From Setoptus koraiensis (Eukaryota > Animalia > Arthropoda): 64,000 nucleotides of DNA. Shown piece by piece: positions 2,235-17,074 of the stretch. The translations under genes and the position numbers were made by a program. A model generated the notes under the pieces. That model was not told where the DNA came from, searched no databases, and saw nothing but the letters and a program-made list of their open reading frames with translations. Each line of letters starts with the position of its first letter. The stretch's first letter is position 1. The stretch lies in NCBI GenBank assembly GCA_048013815.1, contig CM106585.1, positions 19,406,001 through 19,470,000 of the forward strand. The letters run 5' to 3'.

Positions 2235-3088
2235 AAAAATTAATTAACACATAATCATCTATCAGACGTGTTGTGCTAAAAGAAAAAATGATCAGTATTT
2301 GTAGTATTGTGATTAGACTTGCTATTTGTATTTTTTACCATCTATATTTATATCGAAAAACCCAAATAAATATCTTTACACCATACTTATTACGTCATAC
2401 TGCACACAACTCTCGTGAGAACTGACAGGGTACAGACTATGAACAAGGTTTTTAGTTTCTCTTTTCTTCTCGAAGTAGTGAACATGGAATGGACATGTCG
2501 TAGATTGATTTTTTTTTTATTAAAAACGTATAACGTTGACGCACTAATTATGTCTTAACTAGTAATCTATTTAGATTCATTTACTAAAATCAAATGACTC
2601 ATAACTATCTCATTAATAATATATTATCTCTACAAGGTATAATGATGTCAAAATTGACTCAAGTGCCTTTGATGAACCACGAGATGGTGTTTGGCCACAC
2701 TGGTATCTCACATGCATCTGTCACCATTTATCTGACATTGGATGTCGGTAAAGTCCGTTAATTAATTGATTTATGGAATGTCTAATTTACAATGACGGCC
2801 CGTTTGCGACGTTGTTTTATTAACCAGTGCGCACTATTGTTGCAAAGTCCGCCTCTCGCCAATCCAACCGTGTCGAATCAAGCTAGTGATTTTGTTTTGC
2901 GATGAATTGGGTTGAGGTTAGTTGTTGGTTCAATTGGTATCTTTGTATTATAATGGGTATGTTTATGTGTACGTTGACCGGTAGAGGCGAGGTTAATGTG
3001 TGCTATTTCTCGTCATTATCAATCTGTTGTTGTATGTTGGTTAAGCATATCAGACAATTGTTGTTATAGACAGATTTTTGATTTTGTT

Positions 3089-3265
3089 TCAAAAACAGCA
3101 TAAGAAAAAAGGATGTAAGTGAATATAAAAAATGATAGACATTCCAAAGGTTGGATGGGGCAGGTAGGAGGGGGGCAGGGGATGAAAGAGCGCATCTGAA
3201 AGAATTACGTAACATTGCGCAGCCAGTAAGACAGAGACGCAGATGGAGCGCAAAATTGTTGCCAT
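3089..3265 (-). CDS. Possible small secreted peptide or first exon (MATILRSICVSVLLAAQCYVILSDA...)
   Basis: ATG at 3265 is followed by a signal-peptide-like hydrophobic stretch. No homology recognised and no clear downstream exon. Confidence 0.25.
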   Translation of the reverse strand: MATILRSICVSVLLAAQCYVILSDALFHPLPPSYLPHPTFGMSIIFYIHLHPFFLCCF

Positions 3266-3467
3266 TGTCGGATAGGGGAATCCGTGGAACAATCCACAGC
3301 CGATGACTGTAGTATTTCTTCTTTTGTTTCTGGGAAAATTTGACTTGCTGTTGAACTGGACTAATCGAAAAATCTAACGCGTTGTTGGCTGTCCTATGGA
3401 ATGTCCAGCAGTCACTTCAATCATTTCCGGTTCGGATGATGCCAGTCCTAGGATGTGATTTTCGTTT

Positions 3468-5944
3468 TCATTCGTCGGCGCTAGCCGACACTTCAACACC
3501 GTCGCCAGCTGACGCCAGGGCATCACCGCCGCTTGCTTCTGCCAGGGCGGAATCGTCGGAGCCCGCCACCGCCAAGGCTGACGATCTGCTCAATGAGGCG
3601 GCCGCGGCCGCTGCGGCCGAAGAACTTTCATTGGGCACGGGCAAAAAATTGCCGCTCGACGACGAGGCCGAGGCCGATGCCGACGAGAGACTCTCCTTCG
3701 GGAGCGAGTACTCCAGGCCAGAGTGCTGGCCTCCGTCAACCCGAACTTTCACCTGAGAGCTGGTGTCGACAATTTTGCCGGTTGCTCCAATCGAGGGCAT
3801 ACTGAACGATTCGGCGGACGCTCCGGCCTTGCTTGAGTCCACCAAGACATTTCCGTTTTGACCCTGGCGCAAAGCGCTGTGTATATCCTCTACGGCGGCT
3901 GCCGCGGAGGCCGCCGACGCCGACGACGAACTAGAGCTAGAACTGGAGCTTGAACTTGAACTTCCGCTCTGATAAAATTTGTAGTTAGTCGAGTATGAGC
4001 TGGCGGCATTGGCCGTAGCTGTGTCCGCTCTGCTGTCGCCGGCATCCTCGCTCGACGCCGAGTCTGAGTGGGGTGCCGATGATGGCAGGCTGTGTGAGCC
4101 AACTGCTTCGAGCAGCTTCGCCGGATCCTCATCGTGTTTTTTGGCTAGAAGCTCGCCATCGGCGCCCTGCTTCTCGATGACTTCGCCATCTTTGTTCAAT
4201 TTGACCGAACTGATTTCCTTCTCATGTTCGCCATTTTCATTTTCTGTCTCAACTATGGTTTCAATTTCTGTAACTTGTGCGGGCGCGATTTTTTTCACTA
4301 TTGTTGGAGGTTTGCTTGTTGTTGCGATTGCAACAACTGCATGTTTGGTGGTGGTCGCTTTTGGCGCACTCTTAGCGGGTGCTGCCGACGGTCGTTTGCT
4401 GCTCGTCGGAGCCTCATGACCGATGGCTGCTAATCTGCTTTTGCCTGTTGCTTTCAGCGCTTTCGGATCAACCGAAGCGGGTTTTTTTGTCGTCGTGGCG
4501 GCTGCCTTGGCGGCAGGCGGACCAGTCTTGGCAGTTTCAAGCTGTTTCTTGACAGTTTGTTTGGGCGCTTTGGTTCTATTCAGGCTAGATATGACGTCTG
4601 TCGGGTGAAATAGACGCTCGATTTTGTCTTTGGACATCTGTTGCGGCGCTGCGGTCGCTGGTTCCACGGGCACCTCTTTGTTTTCGAGATTCGGTTCCTC
4701 GTCCGGAGTCAAATCGCCAGAATGAGGCTCCCCTTTGTGTTTCGTTTGCGATTCGAGCTTTCTGTCTAGTTCTTGCGCTTGTATTCTGGCCAATTTCAGC
4801 TTGTTCTGGAGCGCTTGACGTTCGGTTTCGATTCGCAACTTCATCAGTTCTATTTCTTCTTTTTCAGTGACGCCTTTCAATTGCGAACCCGACGAGTCCA
4901 GCACTTTTGTCGAGACTTGGCGACTCTTCGGCTCTCCGGCCGCACCAAAGCCGTCCTCTTTGTTGTTCACTGTCACCTTTATGGTCAATTCTTGTGGCGC
5001 CGGTGTACTCTTGGCAGGCGGAGGAGGACCAGGATGAGGATGCGGATGCGGCGGCGGCGGAGGGGGAGGCGATGGAGGATGGGCACCGGCAGCATGATGT
5101 TCTGTGTTGTTGCTCGCATGCTGATCAGCGTGCTCGGGATGATGAGGCAACTCATGGGGGTGGGGGGCTTCGGGATGAGGCAATTCATGGGGGTGGGGGG
5201 CCTCGGCATGATGATGAGCCTCTGTCTCGTGCTGACTTCCGGTGCTATCCGCGTGTGCAGTTGGAGTGGGCGACAGACTTTGGAAATGGCCGTCGTTTGT
5301 GACTTCGAATTCCTCGTTGACCATGCTGGAATCGCCCCCGATAACAGCCACTGGAACGGCGGCAGAGTTTATGATGATTTCGTTACTTTCGAGAGTTGGT
5401 TTTACAGTGGTTGTTGCGCTGTCGTGATGAGGCGCTGCCGTGCTGGCCCCATGATGGTGATCGGCCAGCTTCGAGGCGCTTGCTGATGGGTGCTGTTCAT
5501 GCGGCTTGTAATCGATGGACAGCTCTTCCGGAACGATAATTATCGGACTGGAGCTGGGTTTAGACGACGGCATCACTACTACGGGCTTGTGGCTCGTTTG
5601 TTCCAATTTATTAGCGCTGTGATGGGTTGTCGGCACCAAAACTATTGGCTTGCTACTAGTTGATGGGTGATGACTGGCATCGTCGATTTTGCTTGGTGCA
5701 GCCTTTTGCTTGTTGGCATCTTGAGATGCTGGCACGATGACGGCCTTGGCTGTCGTGGACACTTTCACCTTTTTACTGGCAACTTGGCTGGGATGGCTGG
5801 TGCTGCCCGGCGCGGGATCTTTCGAATATGCAGCCGGAGTTGTTGCTGGCGTTGTTGACGAGGCTCTGGAGGCAGATGGGTGCTCGAGTTGTTTAGTGAC
5901 GTCGTTGTGCGAACTGGGTTTTGCAGTTGTGCTAGCTGTTTCTT
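3468..5944 (-). CDS. Low-complexity Ser/Ala/His/Pro/Lys-rich ORF; putative exon 3 of the giant secreted structural protein
   Basis: The frame is open from about 6010 to the TGA at 3468 without an in-frame ATG at its start, so it needs an upstream exon. Candidate phase-1 acceptor catcgcAG at 5946-5945. Contains HPEAPHPHEL repeats, poly-Pro, a coiled-coil-like segment (EKEEIELMKLRIETERQALQNKLKLA) and poly-Ser/Ala. Confidence 0.75.
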
Positions 5945-6106
5945 CTGCGATGAGGTGCTCAGTCGCTTTTGTTTTCTCGCCGGAGAGTGCACGATATGAA
6001 TTTTTTATAGATTAGAATAGCCAGAAGTTAGTAACGAAATTTCAAGCACACTGCTTTTTGTAAAATTTTCACGCAATATTACGGAAAAAAATTTTACACA
6101 ATAGTC

Positions 6107-6215
6107 TAGAAAATTTTCTCCGAAAATTTTTTCTTCGAAATTTTGTTCCGAAAATTTTCTCCGAAAATTTTTTCTTCGAAATTTTTTTCCGAAATTTTTC
6201 TCCGAAAACATTCGA
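6107..6215. repeat. Degenerate ~14-15 bp tandem array (GAAAATTTT(T)CT(C/T)C) inside the putative intron
   Basis: About 7 imperfect units visible between the 6255 donor and the 5945 acceptor. Confidence 0.8.
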
Positions 6216-6255
6216 TCTTCGGGAAAATTCGACGGAACCGAGATTCAAAACTCAC

Positions 6256-8364
6256 CTGATGGGCTGCTATCCGGCTCAATGATCCACATCGCCATGATGG
6301 CCTTGGATTTTTTGGGAACAATCTTGCTCACTGTTTGGCTGATGTCGTCGAACACATTTTTTGTGTTGCTGTTGATAGCGCCGGTTTTGTTTGCCATCAA
6401 CAAGAGACCCTTCAAGAGGCTGGAATCTGACTGAACGAAAATATGCTGCTCGCTTGCTGCTGTAGGCTGATGAGTTGTGGCCGCCGCTAAATGTGCTGGC
6501 GCATCAGTTGTCTTGTGGTTCGTTTTTGAGCTCACATGAATATCGGTTGTATTGGCACTCAATCCCGAACGAGAGCCTATCCCTTTAATGCTGGTGGTGT
6601 CTGCATCTGGGACTTCCGAACTATACGAAGACGACCCACCATCATCGGCTGCCTCATCATCGCTGTATTGCTTCTTTTTATTTTGGCTGTTTCTTTTCTT
6701 CCACGCAGCCGTTTCTCTTTGATATGCGTCGCGATCTTTTTTCTTGTATTTTGAGTTCGGAATTGGCGAGCGAACGAGTACAACACCTTTTGACTTCTTC
6801 GAATTCTTGCCCCCTTTATCTTTCTTCGTGGGAACGAGCTTGGATAATTTTTCCTTAGGTTGCTTTGGTTTCGGTGTCTTGGGTTTCTTTTTATTCGATG
6901 CCTGCTTAGATTTGGATCTTTTGAAAGCGGCGCGACTGTCATCGTCGGGTTTCGATGAAGTTGTAACGTTGACATCATGAGGAGCCTCAGTTGTTGTTGC
7001 ACTTGTGTCACCGTCTGGTTTATGCGAAGTGCTTTCGGCCTCTGTCTTGTGTTGCGGTGTCGGTGTGGTTGATTTTGGTGTTGCTGTAGTAGATGGCGCC
7101 TCTTTAGGTGCTGGTGTCTCGCTGGTTGATGGTGCTGCTGTGGTTGATGGGGCTGATGTGGTTGTCTCATGTTCGATATCTGAGCGCTCGCTGCCATCAT
7201 CATCCTCGGCGGTTGCCTCTCTTCGTAAGCGCACCAATATTGAAGCACTTTTGGACGGTTTCTTTGTTGATAATGTTGATGACTTTGGCTTTTTGCTTGC
7301 TGTTTTTGGCTTTTTACTTGCTGATTTTGGCTTCTTTGATGATACACTCGTCTTGGCTAGCGCGGGCGCCTTCGTCTTACTGGCACTCTTGCTCTTCAAT
7401 TTCTTCAACAAACTTACCAAGTCTGGCTTCTTTGAAGCGCTCTTCTTTTTTGCTGGCCCCTTAGTGGACGCCGCTTTTTTCTTCGAAGGAATCTTAGTGC
7501 TGCCCATTTTGTCCAAGCCAGTGGATGGATCCAAGCGACTTTTGGAGGCCTCTCTTTTCTTTCGGCGCCCAGATGCTGCACCGGCAGCCGCACCATTGTT
7601 ATTGATTGGCGAACGGACACCAGCCCCAGCTCTTGCTGCCGCAATAGCGGCGGATTTCGATGCTGCCGCGGCCGCTGAACCTGAACCGGAACCAGACGAT
7701 GCTGCGGAACCGGAACCTGAACCAGACGATGCTGCGGAGCCAGAGCCGGAACCAGACGATGCTGCGGAACCGGAACCTGAACCAGACGATGCTGCGGAAC
7801 CGGAACCTGAACCGGAACTAGATGCTGCCGCTGAACCGGAACTAGCGGATGCCGAGGCTTGTTTTCCAGAGTTGTCGTGTTTCTTCATGAGGCTTTCGCC
7901 CACGTTGGCGATCGCTTTGATTGCCTTGTTTGGTAGCTCGCTCACGTTGTCATTGACTTTCGTAGCAAGATGCGAAACGGTTTTTATGCCCTCGTTTACA
8001 ACGGAACCTGTTACTTTCGAGGCCTTGTTCACAACATCGCTAGCCACATCACCTGTTGCCTCAATGCCACTGCCAAGAACTTTGCCTACGCCGCTGGCGG
8101 CCTTTTTCGCGACATCTAAGCCCGCCTCGAGAGGATGTGTAAGAATGTCCATGCCCTCTTGGTGATCTCGTGCTTTTCTTCTCTCGTGTTGGAGTTGGTC
8201 ATCGTTATTTGTCAATAATGAGGTAACACCTTTGATAATACCACTGATGGGATTGTCATCGTGTTCATCACCAGATTTCGAACTGGAACTAGAGGCAGCT
8301 GCCCCACTACCTGCCGACGAGCTAGCCGAGGAGCTGGCCGAAGATCCGTTGCCCGAAAAGCCAC
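6256..8364 (-). CDS. Low-complexity Gly/Ser/Ala plus Lys-rich ORF; putative exon 2 of the giant secreted structural protein
   Basis: 715-aa ORF (6245-8392) ending at a canonical donor TCAG|GTGAGT (intron starts 6255). Contains AASSGSGSGS decamer repeats, an amphipathic segment, Lys-rich tracts and RKKR/RLRR multibasic sites. Candidate acceptor aaacatccAG at 8366-8365. Confidence 0.75.
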
Positions 8365-9248
8365 CTGGATGTTTGACCGGTGAAATGACCATGATTTAAT
8401 ATATTTTTGCCTCCATTAAACTGTTTGTTGTGCTGGTGATTGCATTTGGTGTGGGGTACATATCTATATGTTTTGGTATGTTTTTTTTTTGCACGATGAT
8501 GGTGTGTGTGTGTGGGTGCGTATATCTAGATATGTACTAGTATAAATAAAGTTTATCTACAAACATTTGCAAACGTTTGTATATAGACTTATTTGTTGAT
8601 GTCAGTGTTCTTTCGAGCAACAACAACCAATTTCATCATTCACACATTTGACAAATATTAAACAAGAACAATTCTAGTGAGCAATGATACATTCCTTTTT
8701 CTCTCTAGCCATCACAGTTTGCTCTCTCGATGACAAACATCACTGACAGCCTGGCCTATCCGACACACAGTTCACTTGGTCCATCACTTACGGTCCACTT
8801 TGTCCACTTTGAACTTACGCCAAAACTCACCTGATTTTCCCGAGATACCTGTACGCAGGTCACCTACCTTTGGGTTGTTTTGTCTATGACCAATGACAAA
8901 GTGAACTCGCGTCAGATAAATTGCCAGTCAGCTGATCAGATTCTGATTCACCAACGGGTTAGCAGAGCGCTAATTGCTTCTCTCATGGATAGTCTGAAAT
9001 GAGTCTTGTTGGTGAGCAACACGATACCAGAAAAACATCCCCCTTTACGGAGCAGATGATTCTCATATCCGCGTCGATAGAGCTATCATCAGATTGATGA
9101 TTTAGTCGAGTCAGTGAGACAGGTAAAAAGATATAGAGACAGCAGGTGACTGGTGCAAGTGAACATCTCACACTCTACCGAGACAACCAAATCTATGTAT
9201 GCATCACCCCATAAGCACTGTTACAAAACTATGATACATTGTACTTGA

Positions 9249-11558
9249 TTACAAACCTTTGCCTCCGGATGCTGCACCGGCCGCCGATGATCCTCCTCCT
9301 CTACCGCCGGAAGCTGCTCCAGCCGCCGCGCCTCCTGATCCTCCAGAGGCGGCTCCAGCGGCTGAGCCTCCAGAACCGCCGGCCGCGGCTCCAGCTGCTG
9401 ATCCACCGTGTCCGCCAGAAGCTGCTCCCGCTGCAGAGCCGCCCGATCCACCCGAGGCAGCACCGGCCGCTGAACCTCCGTGACCACCGGACGCTGCTCC
9501 CGCTGCTGAACCGCCTGATCCGCCCGAAGCTGCGCCTGCGGCCGATCCACCGTGTCCACCTGATGCAGCTCCTGCCGCCGATCCGCCAGATCCACCTGAT
9601 GCGGCACCAGCTGCCGAGCCTCCAGAACCACCAGACGCTGCTCCTGCGGCTGATCCACCCGAACCACCGGATGCGGCTCCGGCTGCTGATCCACCGTGAC
9701 CGCCTGATGCTGCACCGGCTGCAGATCCACCTGATCCACCTGAAGCTGCACCGGCTGCTGATCCACCTGATCCACCTGAAGCTGCACCTGCTGCTGATCC
9801 ACCGGAACCACCAGAGGCTGCACCAGCGGCTGATCCACCATGTCCACCTGAAGCTGCACCGGCTGCTGAGCCTCCGGATCCACCCGATGCTGCACCAGCC
9901 GCTGAACCTCCATGACTACCAGATGCTGCTCCCGCTGCGGAACCTCCAGAACCACCAGAGGCAGCTCCCGCGGCTGATCCACCTGATCCACCCGAGGCTG
10001 CACCTGCTGCAGAACCACCGTGTCCACCTGATGCAGCTCCTGCCGCCGATCCACCGGATCCACCTGATGCGGCACCAGCTGCCGAGCCTCCAGAACCACC
10101 AGACGCTGCTCCTGCTGCTGAACCTCCATGTCCTCCTGATGCGGCTCCGGCTGCCGAGCCTCCTGATCCACCGGAAGCGGCTCCAGCTGCTGAACCACCA
10201 GAACCGCCAGAGGCTGCTCCAGCTGCTGATCCACCTGAACCACCTGATGCTGCACCAGCGGCAGAGCCTCCGGATCCACCTGAAGCTGCACCGGCTGCTG
10301 ATCCACCTGAACCACCTGAAGCTGCACCGGCTGCTGATCCACCTGATCCACCTGAAGCTGCACCGGCTGCTGATCCACCTGAACCACCTGATGCTGCACC
10401 AGCGGCAGAGCCTCCGGATCCACCAGAGGCTGCACCGGCTGCTGATCCACCTGAACCACCTGAAGCTGCACCGGCTGCTGATCCACCATGTCCACCTGAT
10501 GCGGCACCTGCGGCTGAGCCTCCAGATCCACCTGATGCGGCACCTGCGGCTGAGCCTCCAGATCCACCTGATGCTGCACCAGCCGCTGAGCCACCTGAAC
10601 CGCCTGAGGCGGCTCCAGCTGCTGAACCTCCTGATCCGCCAGACGCTGCACCAGCTGCTGATCCACCTGATCCACCGGAAGCGGCTCCGGCTGCCGAGCC
10701 TCCTGATCCACCGGAAGCGGCTCCAGCTGCAGATCCACCTGAACCACCTGATGCTGCACCAGCTGCTGATCCGCCAGATCCACCTGAAGCTGCACCAGCG
10801 GCAGAGCCTCCAGATCCACCTGAAGCGGCTCCCGCTGCTGAACCTCCGTGTCCACCTGAGGCGGCTCCAGCTGCTGAACCTCCTGATCCGCCAGACGCTG
10901 CACCAGCGGCTGATCCGCCTGATCCACCGGAAGCGGCTCCAGCTGCTGAACCTCCGTGTCCGCCTGATGCGGCACCTGCTGCTGATCCACCAGATCCTCC
11001 GGACGCGGCTCCTGCTGCGGAACCACCAGAACCGCCCGATGCGGCTCCCGCTGCCGAGCCTCCTGATCCGCCTGAAGCTGCACCGGCTGCTGATCCACCT
11101 GATCCACCAGAGGCTGCACCGGCTGCTGATCCACCGGAACCACCAGAGGCTGCACCAGCGGCTGATCCACCATGTCCACCTGATGCGGCTCCCGCTGCTG
11201 AGCCTCCAGATCCACCCGATGCTGCTCCAGCGGCTGCTCCTCTAAGTCCTGCAGCTGCGCCTGCTGCCGCGCCACCGAGTCCGCCCGATGCGGCTCCGGC
11301 TGCTGCTCCGGCTAGACCGGCCGCGGCTCCTGCCGCCGATCCGCCAAGTCCTCCTGCAGCTGCGCCTGCCGCCGCTCCGCCAAATTTACCTGATGCGGCT
11401 CCCGCTGCTGCTCCGGCTAGTCCGGCGGCGGCTCCTGCGGCTGCCATTGAGTTGCCGACTGCCATCATGTGAGGTCTACACTGAACGACACATAACATTG
11501 TTGCCAATGTTAGAGCTATCAGCGTTTTAGCTGTCTGATTTGATAAAAACTTCTTCAT
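9249..11558 (-). CDS. Secreted Gly/Ala/Ser repeat protein, fibroin/silk/cement-like (stand-alone 769-aa ORF, or exon 1 ending at 9257)
   Basis: ATG and signal peptide MKKFLSNQTAKTLIALTLATMLCVVQC, 7 degenerate AAAGAAxG units, then 52 dodecamers SAAGAASGG(S/H)GG at 9330-11201. Third codon positions vary while the peptide is nearly invariant. Confidence 0.9.
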   Translation of the reverse strand: MKKFLSNQTAKTLIALTLATMLCVVQCRPHMMAVGNSMAAAGAAAGLAGAAAGAASGKFGGAAAGAAAGGLGGSAAGAAAGLAGAAAGAASGGLGGAAAGAAAGLRGAAAGAASGGSGGSAAGAASGGHGGSAAGAASGGSGGSAAGAASGGSGGSAAGAASGGSGGSAAGAASGGSGGSAAGAASGGSGGSAAGAASGGHGGSAAGAASGGSGGSAAGAASGGSGGSAAGAASGGHGGSAAGAASGGSGGSAAGAASGGSGGSAAGAASGGSGGSAAGAASGGSGGSAAGAASGGSGGSAAGAASGGSGGSAAGAASGGSGGSAAGAASGGSGGSAAGAASGGSGGSAAGAASGGHGGSAAGAASGGSGGSAAGAASGGSGGSAAGAASGGSGGSAAGAASGGSGGSAAGAASGGSGGSAAGAASGGSGGSAAGAASGGSGGSAAGAASGGSGGSAAGAASGGSGGSAAGAASGGHGGSAAGAASGGSGGSAAGAASGGSGGSAAGAASGGHGGSAAGAASGGSGGSAAGAASGGSGGSAAGAASGSHGGSAAGAASGGSGGSAAGAASGGHGGSAAGAASGGSGGSAAGAASGGSGGSAAGAASGGSGGSAAGAASGGHGGSAAGAASGGSGGSAAGAASGGSGGSAAGAASGGSGGSAAGAASGGHGGSAAGAASGGSGGSAAGAASGGHGGSAAGAASGGSGGSAAGAASGGHGGSAAGAAAGGSGGSAAGAASGGSGGAAAGAASGGRGGGSSAAGAASGGKGL
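9330..11201 (-). repeat. 36-bp coding tandem repeat, 52 units
   Basis: 624 codons = 52 x 12 aa, counted from the ORF translation. Confidence 0.9.
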
Positions 11559-16669: not shown

Positions 16670-17074
16670 TCAAGGCACAGCAAGATCCCCAGCACAGTAA
16701 CCTAAATACTTATCTATGATTAAGAGGTTAAATGTAGCTGCAATTATTGCAAACAATAGTAGTATATTGTTTGATTGTGTTGTAAAAAATTTACATGATG
16801 AACTAGAATGGTGGTGTATATTGTGATAGTTGCTTGATTGTTGCTGAAAACGATTCCTTTGTTGGTCAACAATATTCATTTTGCGCTCCATAGCCACAGA
16901 TTTGAAAGTTTCCTCAATTAGAGCCTCGCATTTAAAATTTCCACCTGAATTTAGATTAACATTGCTAAGGGTGACTATTCGATCAGTGGAGCGTAACAAA
17001 TCTACATGAATGCCCTCCATTCTGAACGCTTGTTTCCTTTCCTCTATCCTCTCGCTGGGCAAGAATCTATAGAA
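16670..17074 (-). CDS. Beat (beaten path)-like Ig protein, exon 3
   Basis: FYRFLPSER...FRMEGIHVDLLRSTDRIVTLSNVNLNSGGNFKCEALIEETF matches the Beat Ig1 consensus. Acceptor acgcAG at 17076-17075. Ends in a hydrophobic C-terminal tail. Confidence 0.85.
   Translation of the reverse strand, partial: FYRFLPSERIEERKQAFRMEGIHVDLLRSTDRIVTLSNVNLNSGGNFKCEALIEETFKSVAMERKMNIVDQQRNRFQQQSSNYHNIHHHSSSSCKFFTTQSNNILLLFAIIAATFNLLIIDKYLGYCAGDLAVP

Follow-up and report, generated by a model that had tools for sequence, protein, structure and literature searches.

A fibroin-like repeat gene with candidate optional coding exons in an apparent eriophyoid-lineage mite genome

Three long collinear open reading frames (ORFs) lie on the minus strand of a 64,000-nucleotide stretch of DNA (contig CM106585.1, positions 19,406,001 to 19,470,000; hereafter the window, numbered from its first letter). 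An earlier reading of the letters alone (the original prediction) had tentatively joined them as three exons of one secreted silk/cement-like polyprotein of ~2,295 aa. We found the ORFs as placed and on that strand, together with all the splice motifs named (a slash marks a splice or cleavage boundary): GGCAAAG/GTTTGT at 9257, CCAG/GTGGC at 8364, TCAG/GTGAGT at 6256 and CGCAG/AA at 5944. The exon sum, 2302 + 2109 + 2477 = 6888 nt, was recomputed and is correct. The ORFs, exons and introns of the locus are as follows, including those revised by the RNA evidence presented below (UTR, untranslated region).

11558-9249, minus strand: ORF1, 769 aa, with a hydrophobic, signal-like N-terminus
8392-6245, minus strand: ORF2, 715 aa
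5768-3468, minus strand: ORF3, whose frame stays open further upstream
9257..11558, minus strand: coding part of exon 1, with the ATG at 11558, 767 codons plus 1 nt, and a phase-1 end
6256..8364, minus strand: exon 2, 2,109 nt, phase 1-1 (symmetric), stop-free
5966..6255, minus strand: intron 2, 290 nt, GTGAGT...AAAAG, phase 1, spliced out in RNA
3468..5965, minus strand: coding part of exon 3, 2,498 nt, with the TGA at 3470-3468
2883..9256, minus strand: long intron of the dominant RNA form, 6,374 nt, GT..AG, enclosing exons 2 and 3
8365..9256, minus strand: proposed intron 1 of a long form, GT..AG, phase 1; a candidate from reading the sequence
2883..3467, minus strand: 3' UTR of the exon-3-containing RNA, unspliced across acceptor 2882 into the common terminal region
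2800..2882, minus strand: short terminal exon, with TGA at 2880-2878 and AATAAA at 2821-2816; the 3' end at ~2800 is an estimate

Every junction is in phase 1 and the length of exon 2 is a multiple of 3, so that all exon combinations are in frame. As the original prediction had it, a signal peptide is found only in the first ORF (none was read in ORF2) and the last ORF has no in-frame start ATG; the first ATG in frame is residue 131 of the exon-3 product.

The dominant transcript and its fibroin-like product

RNA evidence was taken from contigs of four public runs that contain the locus, aligned to the window. Exons and introns are evenly covered in three of the runs (X1-X3), which are therefore DNA-like, and the fourth (X4) is RNA-like. 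Eight of the nine aligned X4 contigs match the window at 99% identity or more, and X4 has zero depth at 5990-6189 and 8390-9189, within both of the proposed introns. The depths given here are contig depths, which are a poor measure of expression.

At the end of exon 1 (9257-9379), X4 has a contig with a depth of ~237. Its match to the window stops exactly at 9257 and is followed by 28 other letters, which have a single occurrence in the window, at 2855-2882 (0 expected by chance). The acceptor at 2882 reads ...CACTAG/CTTGATTCG on the minus strand and lies 60 nt before the AATAAA at 2821. Because the contig jumps from 9257 to this unique site, the dominant RNA form removes 9256-2883, including ORF2 and ORF3. 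The donor predicted at 9257 is thus used in RNA. Since it is a phase-1 donor, the join to 2882 reads G/CT TGA, a split Ala codon and then a stop, and the protein ends ...SGGK-A after 768 residues. The stop codon of this short form exists solely in the spliced mRNA.

The main product of the locus is therefore not the ~2,295-aa polyprotein, as the dominant X4 RNA encodes 768 aa only. It is a putatively secreted, fibroin-like Gly/Ala/Ser protein with a predicted signal peptide and 52 dodecamers, and its gene appears to be highly expressed. We looked for RNA ending past the TAA at 9249, as would be expected of a self-contained ORF1 transcript, and found none; the X4 depth falls to zero over 8390-9189, and there is no poly(A) signal in 9256-8401. 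Two features were read in exon 1.

11478..11558, minus strand: signal-peptide-like N-terminus, with MKK, a hydrophobic core and ...VVQC/RP; cleavage site read by eye
9330..11201, minus strand: dodecamer array, 52 in-register SAAGAASGG(S/H)GG units with a 36-nt period

The hydrophobic core at the ORF1 N-terminus, read from the translation, is 14 residues long, and exon 1 would supply the predicted signal peptide. The exon 1 product is 39% Gly, 34% Ala and 20% Ser (93% for the three together), and 12 of the 52 dodecamers have His at position 10. At the DNA level 48 of the 52 units are distinct. Amino-acid identity among the units is 96%, compared to an identity of 41% at third codon positions, showing that protein-level selection, rather than recent DNA homogenisation, keeps the array. 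It offers a clear natural case of a long repeat maintained in this way. A single-sequence AlphaFold2 prediction of the array gave a mean pLDDT (predicted local distance difference test score) of 29 and no secondary structure, although this is a monomer prediction and fibre assembly is outside its reach.

Exons 2 and 3 in RNA and in protein

A second splice is seen in X4. Record 27 joins 6256 to 5965 and skips 290 nt that begin and end as CT..AC when read on the plus strand and hence as GT..AG on the minus strand. The original prediction was right that donor 6256 is used and that ORF2 and ORF3 are joined in frame in one mRNA, but the RNA partner of 6256 is 5965 and not 5944. The true exon-3 acceptor, AAAAG/CG, lies 21 nt upstream of 5944 in the same frame and adds 7 codons, so that the corrected three-exon form is 2302 + 2109 + 2498 = 6909 nt, or 2,302 aa.

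ORF2 and ORF3 are thus exons of one mRNA, which is much rarer than the short form. X4 depth over the two exons is 0-8.8, patchy and dropping toward the 5' end, with exon 2 covered patchily at 1.4-4.9 and exon 3 at about 4-9. The contrast in depth between exon 1 and exons 2 and 3 is roughly 30-100-fold, subject to the caveat given above for contig depth.

The 3' end of this RNA was traced with a further X4 contig, record 23 (1,069 nt), of which 534 nt cover 3923-3390. The rest, 535 nt, would extend to 2855, where the spliced 9257-to-2882 contig ends as well. Exon 1 and the long intron both end in AG, and the sum 1 + 2 + 28 = 31 fits a k=31 graph in which the paths merge at 2882; for this reason we take record 23 to be collinear across 2883/2882. 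Exon-3-containing RNA therefore runs unspliced into the common terminal region. This is consistent with the poly(A) signals, as neither AATAAA nor ATTAAA occurs from the ORF3 stop to 2883, or at any point before 2821.

X4 is without a contig at 8121-8389, so the 5' end of the exon-2 RNA is unassembled there. We performed a presence/absence search with 8393-8650, which would be the 5' UTR of an independent ORF2 transcript, and it returned only DNA-like runs. The three RNA-like runs of one study (P4) that contain 20-28% of the ORF2 words are not among the runs with 8393-8650. The search is weak evidence against a transcription start near 8580.

Some minor observations concern the introns and UTR of this RNA. 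Both RNA-verified acceptors (5966 and 2883 contexts) have an A-rich AAAACAAAA motif upstream, not a polypyrimidine tract, which may be a lineage-specific 3' splice-site context. Intron 2 contains short tandem TTTTCGGAGAAAA-type repeats (6115-6200), and runs X2 and X3 have a 55-nt deletion there (6123 to 6179) relative to the window, an indel polymorphism between strains. Within the exon-3 3' UTR, at 3209-3265 on the minus strand, a short ATG-started, signal-peptide-like ORF, MATILRSICVSVLLAAQCY, is followed by GTAATT, a possible donor. No splicing was seen at this GTAATT, and record 23 is collinear through the region; the ORF may be due to chance, or may belong to another small secreted gene, as a relic or as its first exon.

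Exon 2 comprises 702 full codons. It begins with a Ser/Ala/Gly stretch in the style of exon 1, followed by an 11-mer amphipathic helix, five SGSGSGSAAS repeats and an Ala-rich stretch, and continues with a first Lys-rich block, a Thr/Ser/Pro block of mucin type and a second Lys-rich block before a mixed tail. Three of its features bear on the possible function.

7856..8251, minus strand: predicted continuous helix of ~130 residues, with 7-8 eleven-residue amphipathic repeats and 11/3 periodicity
7553..7564, minus strand: furin-type site RKKR, then EAS, at the upstream edge of the first Lys-rich block
7220..7231, minus strand: furin-type site RLRR, then EAT, at the downstream edge of the same block

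Apart from its eleven-residue periodicity, the helix block is non-repetitive. Its hydrophobic power at a period of 3.667 is 205, compared to 9.4 (P<0.0005), and single-sequence AlphaFold2 predicted a helix at residues 9-140, with a mean pLDDT of 81. The first Lys-rich block (~110 residues, net charge ~+30) is bracketed exactly by RKKR/EAS and RLRR/EAT. Two sites of the RX[K/R]R type are observed, where shuffled sequences give an expectation of 0.09 (P~0.002). The 'polyprotein' idea of the original prediction fits two furin-type sites read between modules in this way.

Exon 3 comprises 831 codons. A Thr/Ser/Pro/His-rich part, HPHELPH-type His-Pro repeats and a poly-Pro run are followed by a charged stretch of helical character, a block rich in Lys, Ala and Thr, and a tail of poly-Ser and poly-Ala. 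Cys is absent from the 1,533 residues of exons 2 and 3. By composition and motifs, the proteins of this locus do look like secreted structural or adhesive material, as had been proposed. Variation among the runs points to selection on the encoded protein: of 18 variant positions in ORF2 and ORF3, 10 are synonymous and 8 nonsynonymous, although synonymous sites make up 24% (binomial P=0.004; pN/pS ~0.25). Because synonymous variants are in excess, ORF2 and ORF3 are constrained coding sequence.

One gene with two outputs, or two genes

We consider it probable, with moderate confidence, that exons 2 and 3 are optional coding exons of the repeat gene, giving a 2,302-aa long isoform from one transcription unit. 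The rarer RNA would then start at the exon 1 promoter and take the proximal acceptor 8364, with exons 2 and 3 extending the repeat protein to its full length. The long form would enter the secretory pathway by means of the signal peptide of exon 1, and a proprotein convertase could cut it at RKKR/EAS and RLRR/EAT. Cutting would release a fibroin-like block with the 11/3 amphipathic helix, then the polycationic Lys-rich peptide and, as the last product, a mucin-like, His-Pro-rich, poly-Ser/Ala tail. The function may be that of an extracellular fibre or attachment material, in which the short form would provide the structural bulk and the long form would add an interface-active amphipathic helix together with polycationic and glycosylated or His-rich adhesive modules. 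The choice of acceptor, 8364 or 2882, would set the ratio of short to long form. A silk or adhesive role is inferred only, from composition and motifs.

Several lines of evidence favour one gene. The furin-type sites and the mucin-like block of exon 2 are secretory features, and exon 1 has the only signal peptide. From the in-frame stop at 8397-8395 to the ORF2 body there is a single AG, at 8364, and it is in the phase of donor 9257. The same conclusion is favoured by the phase-1 junctions, by the length of exon 2 and by the poly(A) region that both RNA forms have in common. There are also four ATGs (8566, 8461, 8445 and 8416) within the 175 nt before the ORF2 ATG, which would make a poor 5' UTR for an independent ORF2 transcript. 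Finally, the lineage is intron-poor, with massive, 3'-biased intron loss (PMC7738191), so the keeping of a 3'-terminal intron in a highly expressed gene suggests that it is used.

Other observations weigh against this reading. The sole partner seen for donor 9257 is 2882; X4 has no contig joining 9257 to 8364 (zero depth at 8190-8389), and acceptor 8364 is of no special strength. Start-codon context is good at the ORF2 ATG (8392), with A at -3 and G at +4, and TATA-like letters around 8580 make an internal promoter possible. All of the RNA evidence comes from contigs of one run, the signal peptide and furin cleavage are sequence readings, and the proposed function is drawn from composition and motifs alone.

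These observations would in part be explained by a nested gene, in which ORF2 and ORF3 are the two exons of a separate gene for ~1,545 aa that starts at ATG 8392, inside the 6.4-kb intron. Such a gene would have its own promoter on the same strand and use the same poly(A) site, and its product would be an intracellular or unconventionally exported low-complexity protein. The Kozak-like context of ATG 8392, with an in-frame stop 2 codons upstream, the TATA-like sequence, the missing 9257-to-8364 contig and the ~30-100-fold difference in depth from exon 1 are all in keeping with it. However, a nested gene would carry a mucin-like block and two furin-type sites at block borders (P~0.002) without a signal peptide. 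Its first exon would also contain, as the lone AG between the in-frame stop and the ORF body, an acceptor in exactly the phase of donor 9257, and its 5' UTR would include the four upstream ATGs. X4 RNA cover is nil at 8390-8589, the search with 8393-8650 returned no RNA-like run, and the poly(A) site is common to both RNAs. We regard a nested gene as less likely than one gene, and as the main alternative to it.

It is very unlikely that the exon 2/3 RNA is a by-product, i.e. partly processed pre-mRNA or an excised-intron remnant that makes no protein, with the ORFs held open by low complexity. The RNA does sit in the intron of a very highly expressed gene at a few per cent of the depth of exon 1, and the same stretches contain antisense and off-frame ORFs of similar length. 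However, a lariat or pre-mRNA would cover the whole intron, whereas 8390-9189 has zero depth while exons 2, 3 and the 3' UTR are covered. The 6256-to-5965 splicing is precise, in phase and GT..AG; the 10 synonymous variants among 18, compared to the 24% expected (P=0.004), indicate coding constraint; and the non-repetitive 11/3 helix block and the ordered motifs go beyond what stop-free low complexity gives.

The constitutive ~2,295-aa polyprotein as main gene product is the least probable reading. In its favour are the phase compatibility of the three ORFs, the use of both donors and a signal peptide in exon 1 alone. The X4 sample contradicts it in its dominant 9257-to-2882 join with a stop after 768 aa, in an exon 2/3 depth of ~2-8 compared to ~237 and in the true acceptor at 5965 rather than 5944; a tissue or stage in which acceptor 8364 predominates is the only setting where it might apply.

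A bolder extension of the one-gene reading is that the locus encodes the missing fibre or attachment secretion of gall-mite-lineage mites, with one splice choice toggling between 'thread' and 'glue'. We think this unlikely. Splicing to the distal acceptor 2882 would yield the 768-aa fibroin-like core by itself, and use of the proximal acceptor 8364 would append 1,534 residues that comprise the surface-active 11/3 helix, a furin-released polycationic peptide and mucin-like and His-Pro-rich adhesive modules. Both a fibre and its primer or adhesive would then come from one promoter in a genome with extremely few introns, and a peptide repeat that hardly varies while its synonymous divergence is saturated would be the sign of an ancient array under strict selection.

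Known systems, lineage and genomic surroundings

Homology searches gave no relatives. Pieces of exons 1, 2 and 3 matched no Pfam family at E<=1, apart from two sub-threshold chance hits, and an exhaustive phmmer search with the 831-aa exon 3 product against 1.84 billion representative proteins returned 0 matches at E<=0.001. Word-indexed searches found no match for whole ORF2, where low-complexity words saturated the 8,000 candidates, or for its non-repetitive residues 38-185; their length filter of 393-1,251 aa would hide a gene model of 1.5-2.3 thousand residues, so they cannot test gene structure. Exact-sequence look-ups of ORF1, ORF2 and the neighbouring SAM (S-adenosylmethionine) synthetase found no record. 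In the ESM Atlas, ORF1 and exon 2 scored at most 0.74, and the Gly-rich cell-wall/keratin-like, dermokine and mucin-like proteins retrieved are compositional look-alikes that serve as leads only. With regard to spidroins and other known silk families, we found no conserved terminal domains and no family-level match in the Pfam or HMMER searches. We describe the locus as a predicted orphan, secreted-type low-complexity structural protein gene with putative large optional exons, its long protein being a prediction.

By analogy, the closest worked-out case of such gene logic may be Bombyx mori sericin 1 (Ser1), a silk glue for which alternative splicing of a single primary transcript gives mRNAs of 2.3-10 kb (PMC8329953). 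Like Ser1, the present locus would be a single gene for a secreted, Ser-rich, low-complexity protein of the silk-associated type, with mRNA lengths that differ through kilobase-sized coding exons (~2.4 kb vs ~7.6 kb here). Two splice patterns, 9257 to 2882 and 6256 to 5965, have a common 3' region; a common start is not among the X4 joins, and a common primary transcript is here what we infer. The two genes show no sequence similarity in Pfam or HMMER searches, and one is from a mite and the other from a moth. Unlike Ser1, the short form described here splices to an acceptor in the 3' UTR, which creates the stop codon.

The exon 1 product resembles Gly/Ala/Ser-rich fibroins, such as the Bombyx heavy chain (GAGAGS) and those of Tetranychus urticae, in placing a signal peptide before an extended run of short Gly/Ala/Ser repeats. 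It differs in its 12-residue SAAGAASGG(S/H)GG unit and in the lack of conserved terminal domains or detected homology, and its likeness is known from the sequence rather than from a silk gland or fibre. For T. urticae, 17 predicted Gly/Ala/Ser-rich silk genes have been described (PMC12534534). Several spider-mite 'fibroins' that owed their name to composition and proteomics have since proved to be salivary (PMC12534534), and because of this reassignment we are cautious about naming the present gene from its composition.

The helix of exon 2 recalls another group of proteins. Class-A amphipathic 11-mer helix proteins, among them apolipoproteins, group-3 late embryogenesis abundant (LEA) proteins, synucleins and perilipins, bind lipid or hydrophobic interfaces. 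The exon 2 block is like them in its 7-8 eleven-residue repeats, its 11/3 period and its predicted continuous helix. Unlike them, it has no Pfam match at E<=1 to apolipoprotein, LEA_4, synuclein or perilipin, and it is a module in a large, secreted-type low-complexity protein. The present proteins also resemble, in composition only, the glycine-rich proteins of tick cement and the egg-stalk silk of lacewings, which are adhesives or fibres that arthropods secrete and that consist of short Gly/Ser/Ala repeats.

The genome appears, from sequence comparison, to be that of an eriophyoid-lineage mite or of the nearest sister group. The neighbouring COG4 gene (37789-39645, minus strand) has its best named match in Aceria tosichella (Eriophyoidea) at 40% identity, with ~34 further COG4 matches at 39-45% and oribatid mites behind at ~35%. 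COG4 identity to the relatives is 39-48% overall, and no homologue of exon 3 is detectable in them. In a COG4 tree, the gene of the window is sister to a clade with Aceria with a support of 100/100, on a long branch; this is one gene. Introns are nearly absent from the genes of the window. SAM synthetase (33722-34876, plus strand), COG4 and a 1,309-aa protein (40651-44580, plus strand) are each one uninterrupted ORF, which fits an intron-poor, eriophyoid-like genome.

Eriophyoid mites are major crop pests and virus vectors, and we know of no protein of silk, cement or attachment material that has been identified in Eriophyoidea or in the groups closest to them. The locus offers a concrete, apparently highly expressed candidate for a silk, cement or attachment protein of the eriophyoid lineage, with exact junctions given, and would carry greater weight if it were the missing one. 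Silk and attachment secretions of Eriophyoidea come from anal glands, and a 2026 review of eriophyoid webbing names glands with no protein component known (PMC13027148). The likeness of the locus to that secretion is one of lineage only, and the present mite may be one that does not spin; saliva, egg glue, spermatophore and cuticle are equally possible.

For annotation, both an ORF-by-ORF model and a joining of the three ORFs would be wrong, as the main product is short and its stop codon arises only after splicing. A 6.4-kb 3'-terminal intron with 4.6 kb of optional coding sequence is also unusual in a lineage of 3'-biased intron loss (PMC7738191).

Other candidates near the locus were set aside. 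Plus-strand ORFs at 4773-5486, 7005-8165 and 9239-11245 and an off-frame minus-strand ORF at 9221-11275 were rejected as genes, since they merely mirror repetitive coding sequence that is poor in stop codons. Scans for Rfam families and tRNAs over 2.3-12.6 kb gave no matches.

Elsewhere in the window, the ~21 kb from 11560 to 33000 are without an ORF of at least 200 aa and reach a GC content of 0.53-0.57 at 24-28 kb; an immunoglobulin (Ig)-like fragment lies at 16670-17062 on the minus strand. This region may be a multi-exon gene or non-coding territory, either of which would be unusual beside compact intron-poor genes. A run of N at ~46900-47430 (an assembly gap, giving X in the translations of both strands) lies inside an Ig-domain-like fragment. 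It should also be noted that a Ras-like small GTPase is apparently split over two long minus-strand ORFs (53884-56226 and 50304-52067). The first ORF carries the P-loop GASGVGKTS at its end, the second ...DAFILVYSVDD... at its start, and both are embedded in hundreds of poly-Q, poly-N and Ser-rich low-complexity residues.

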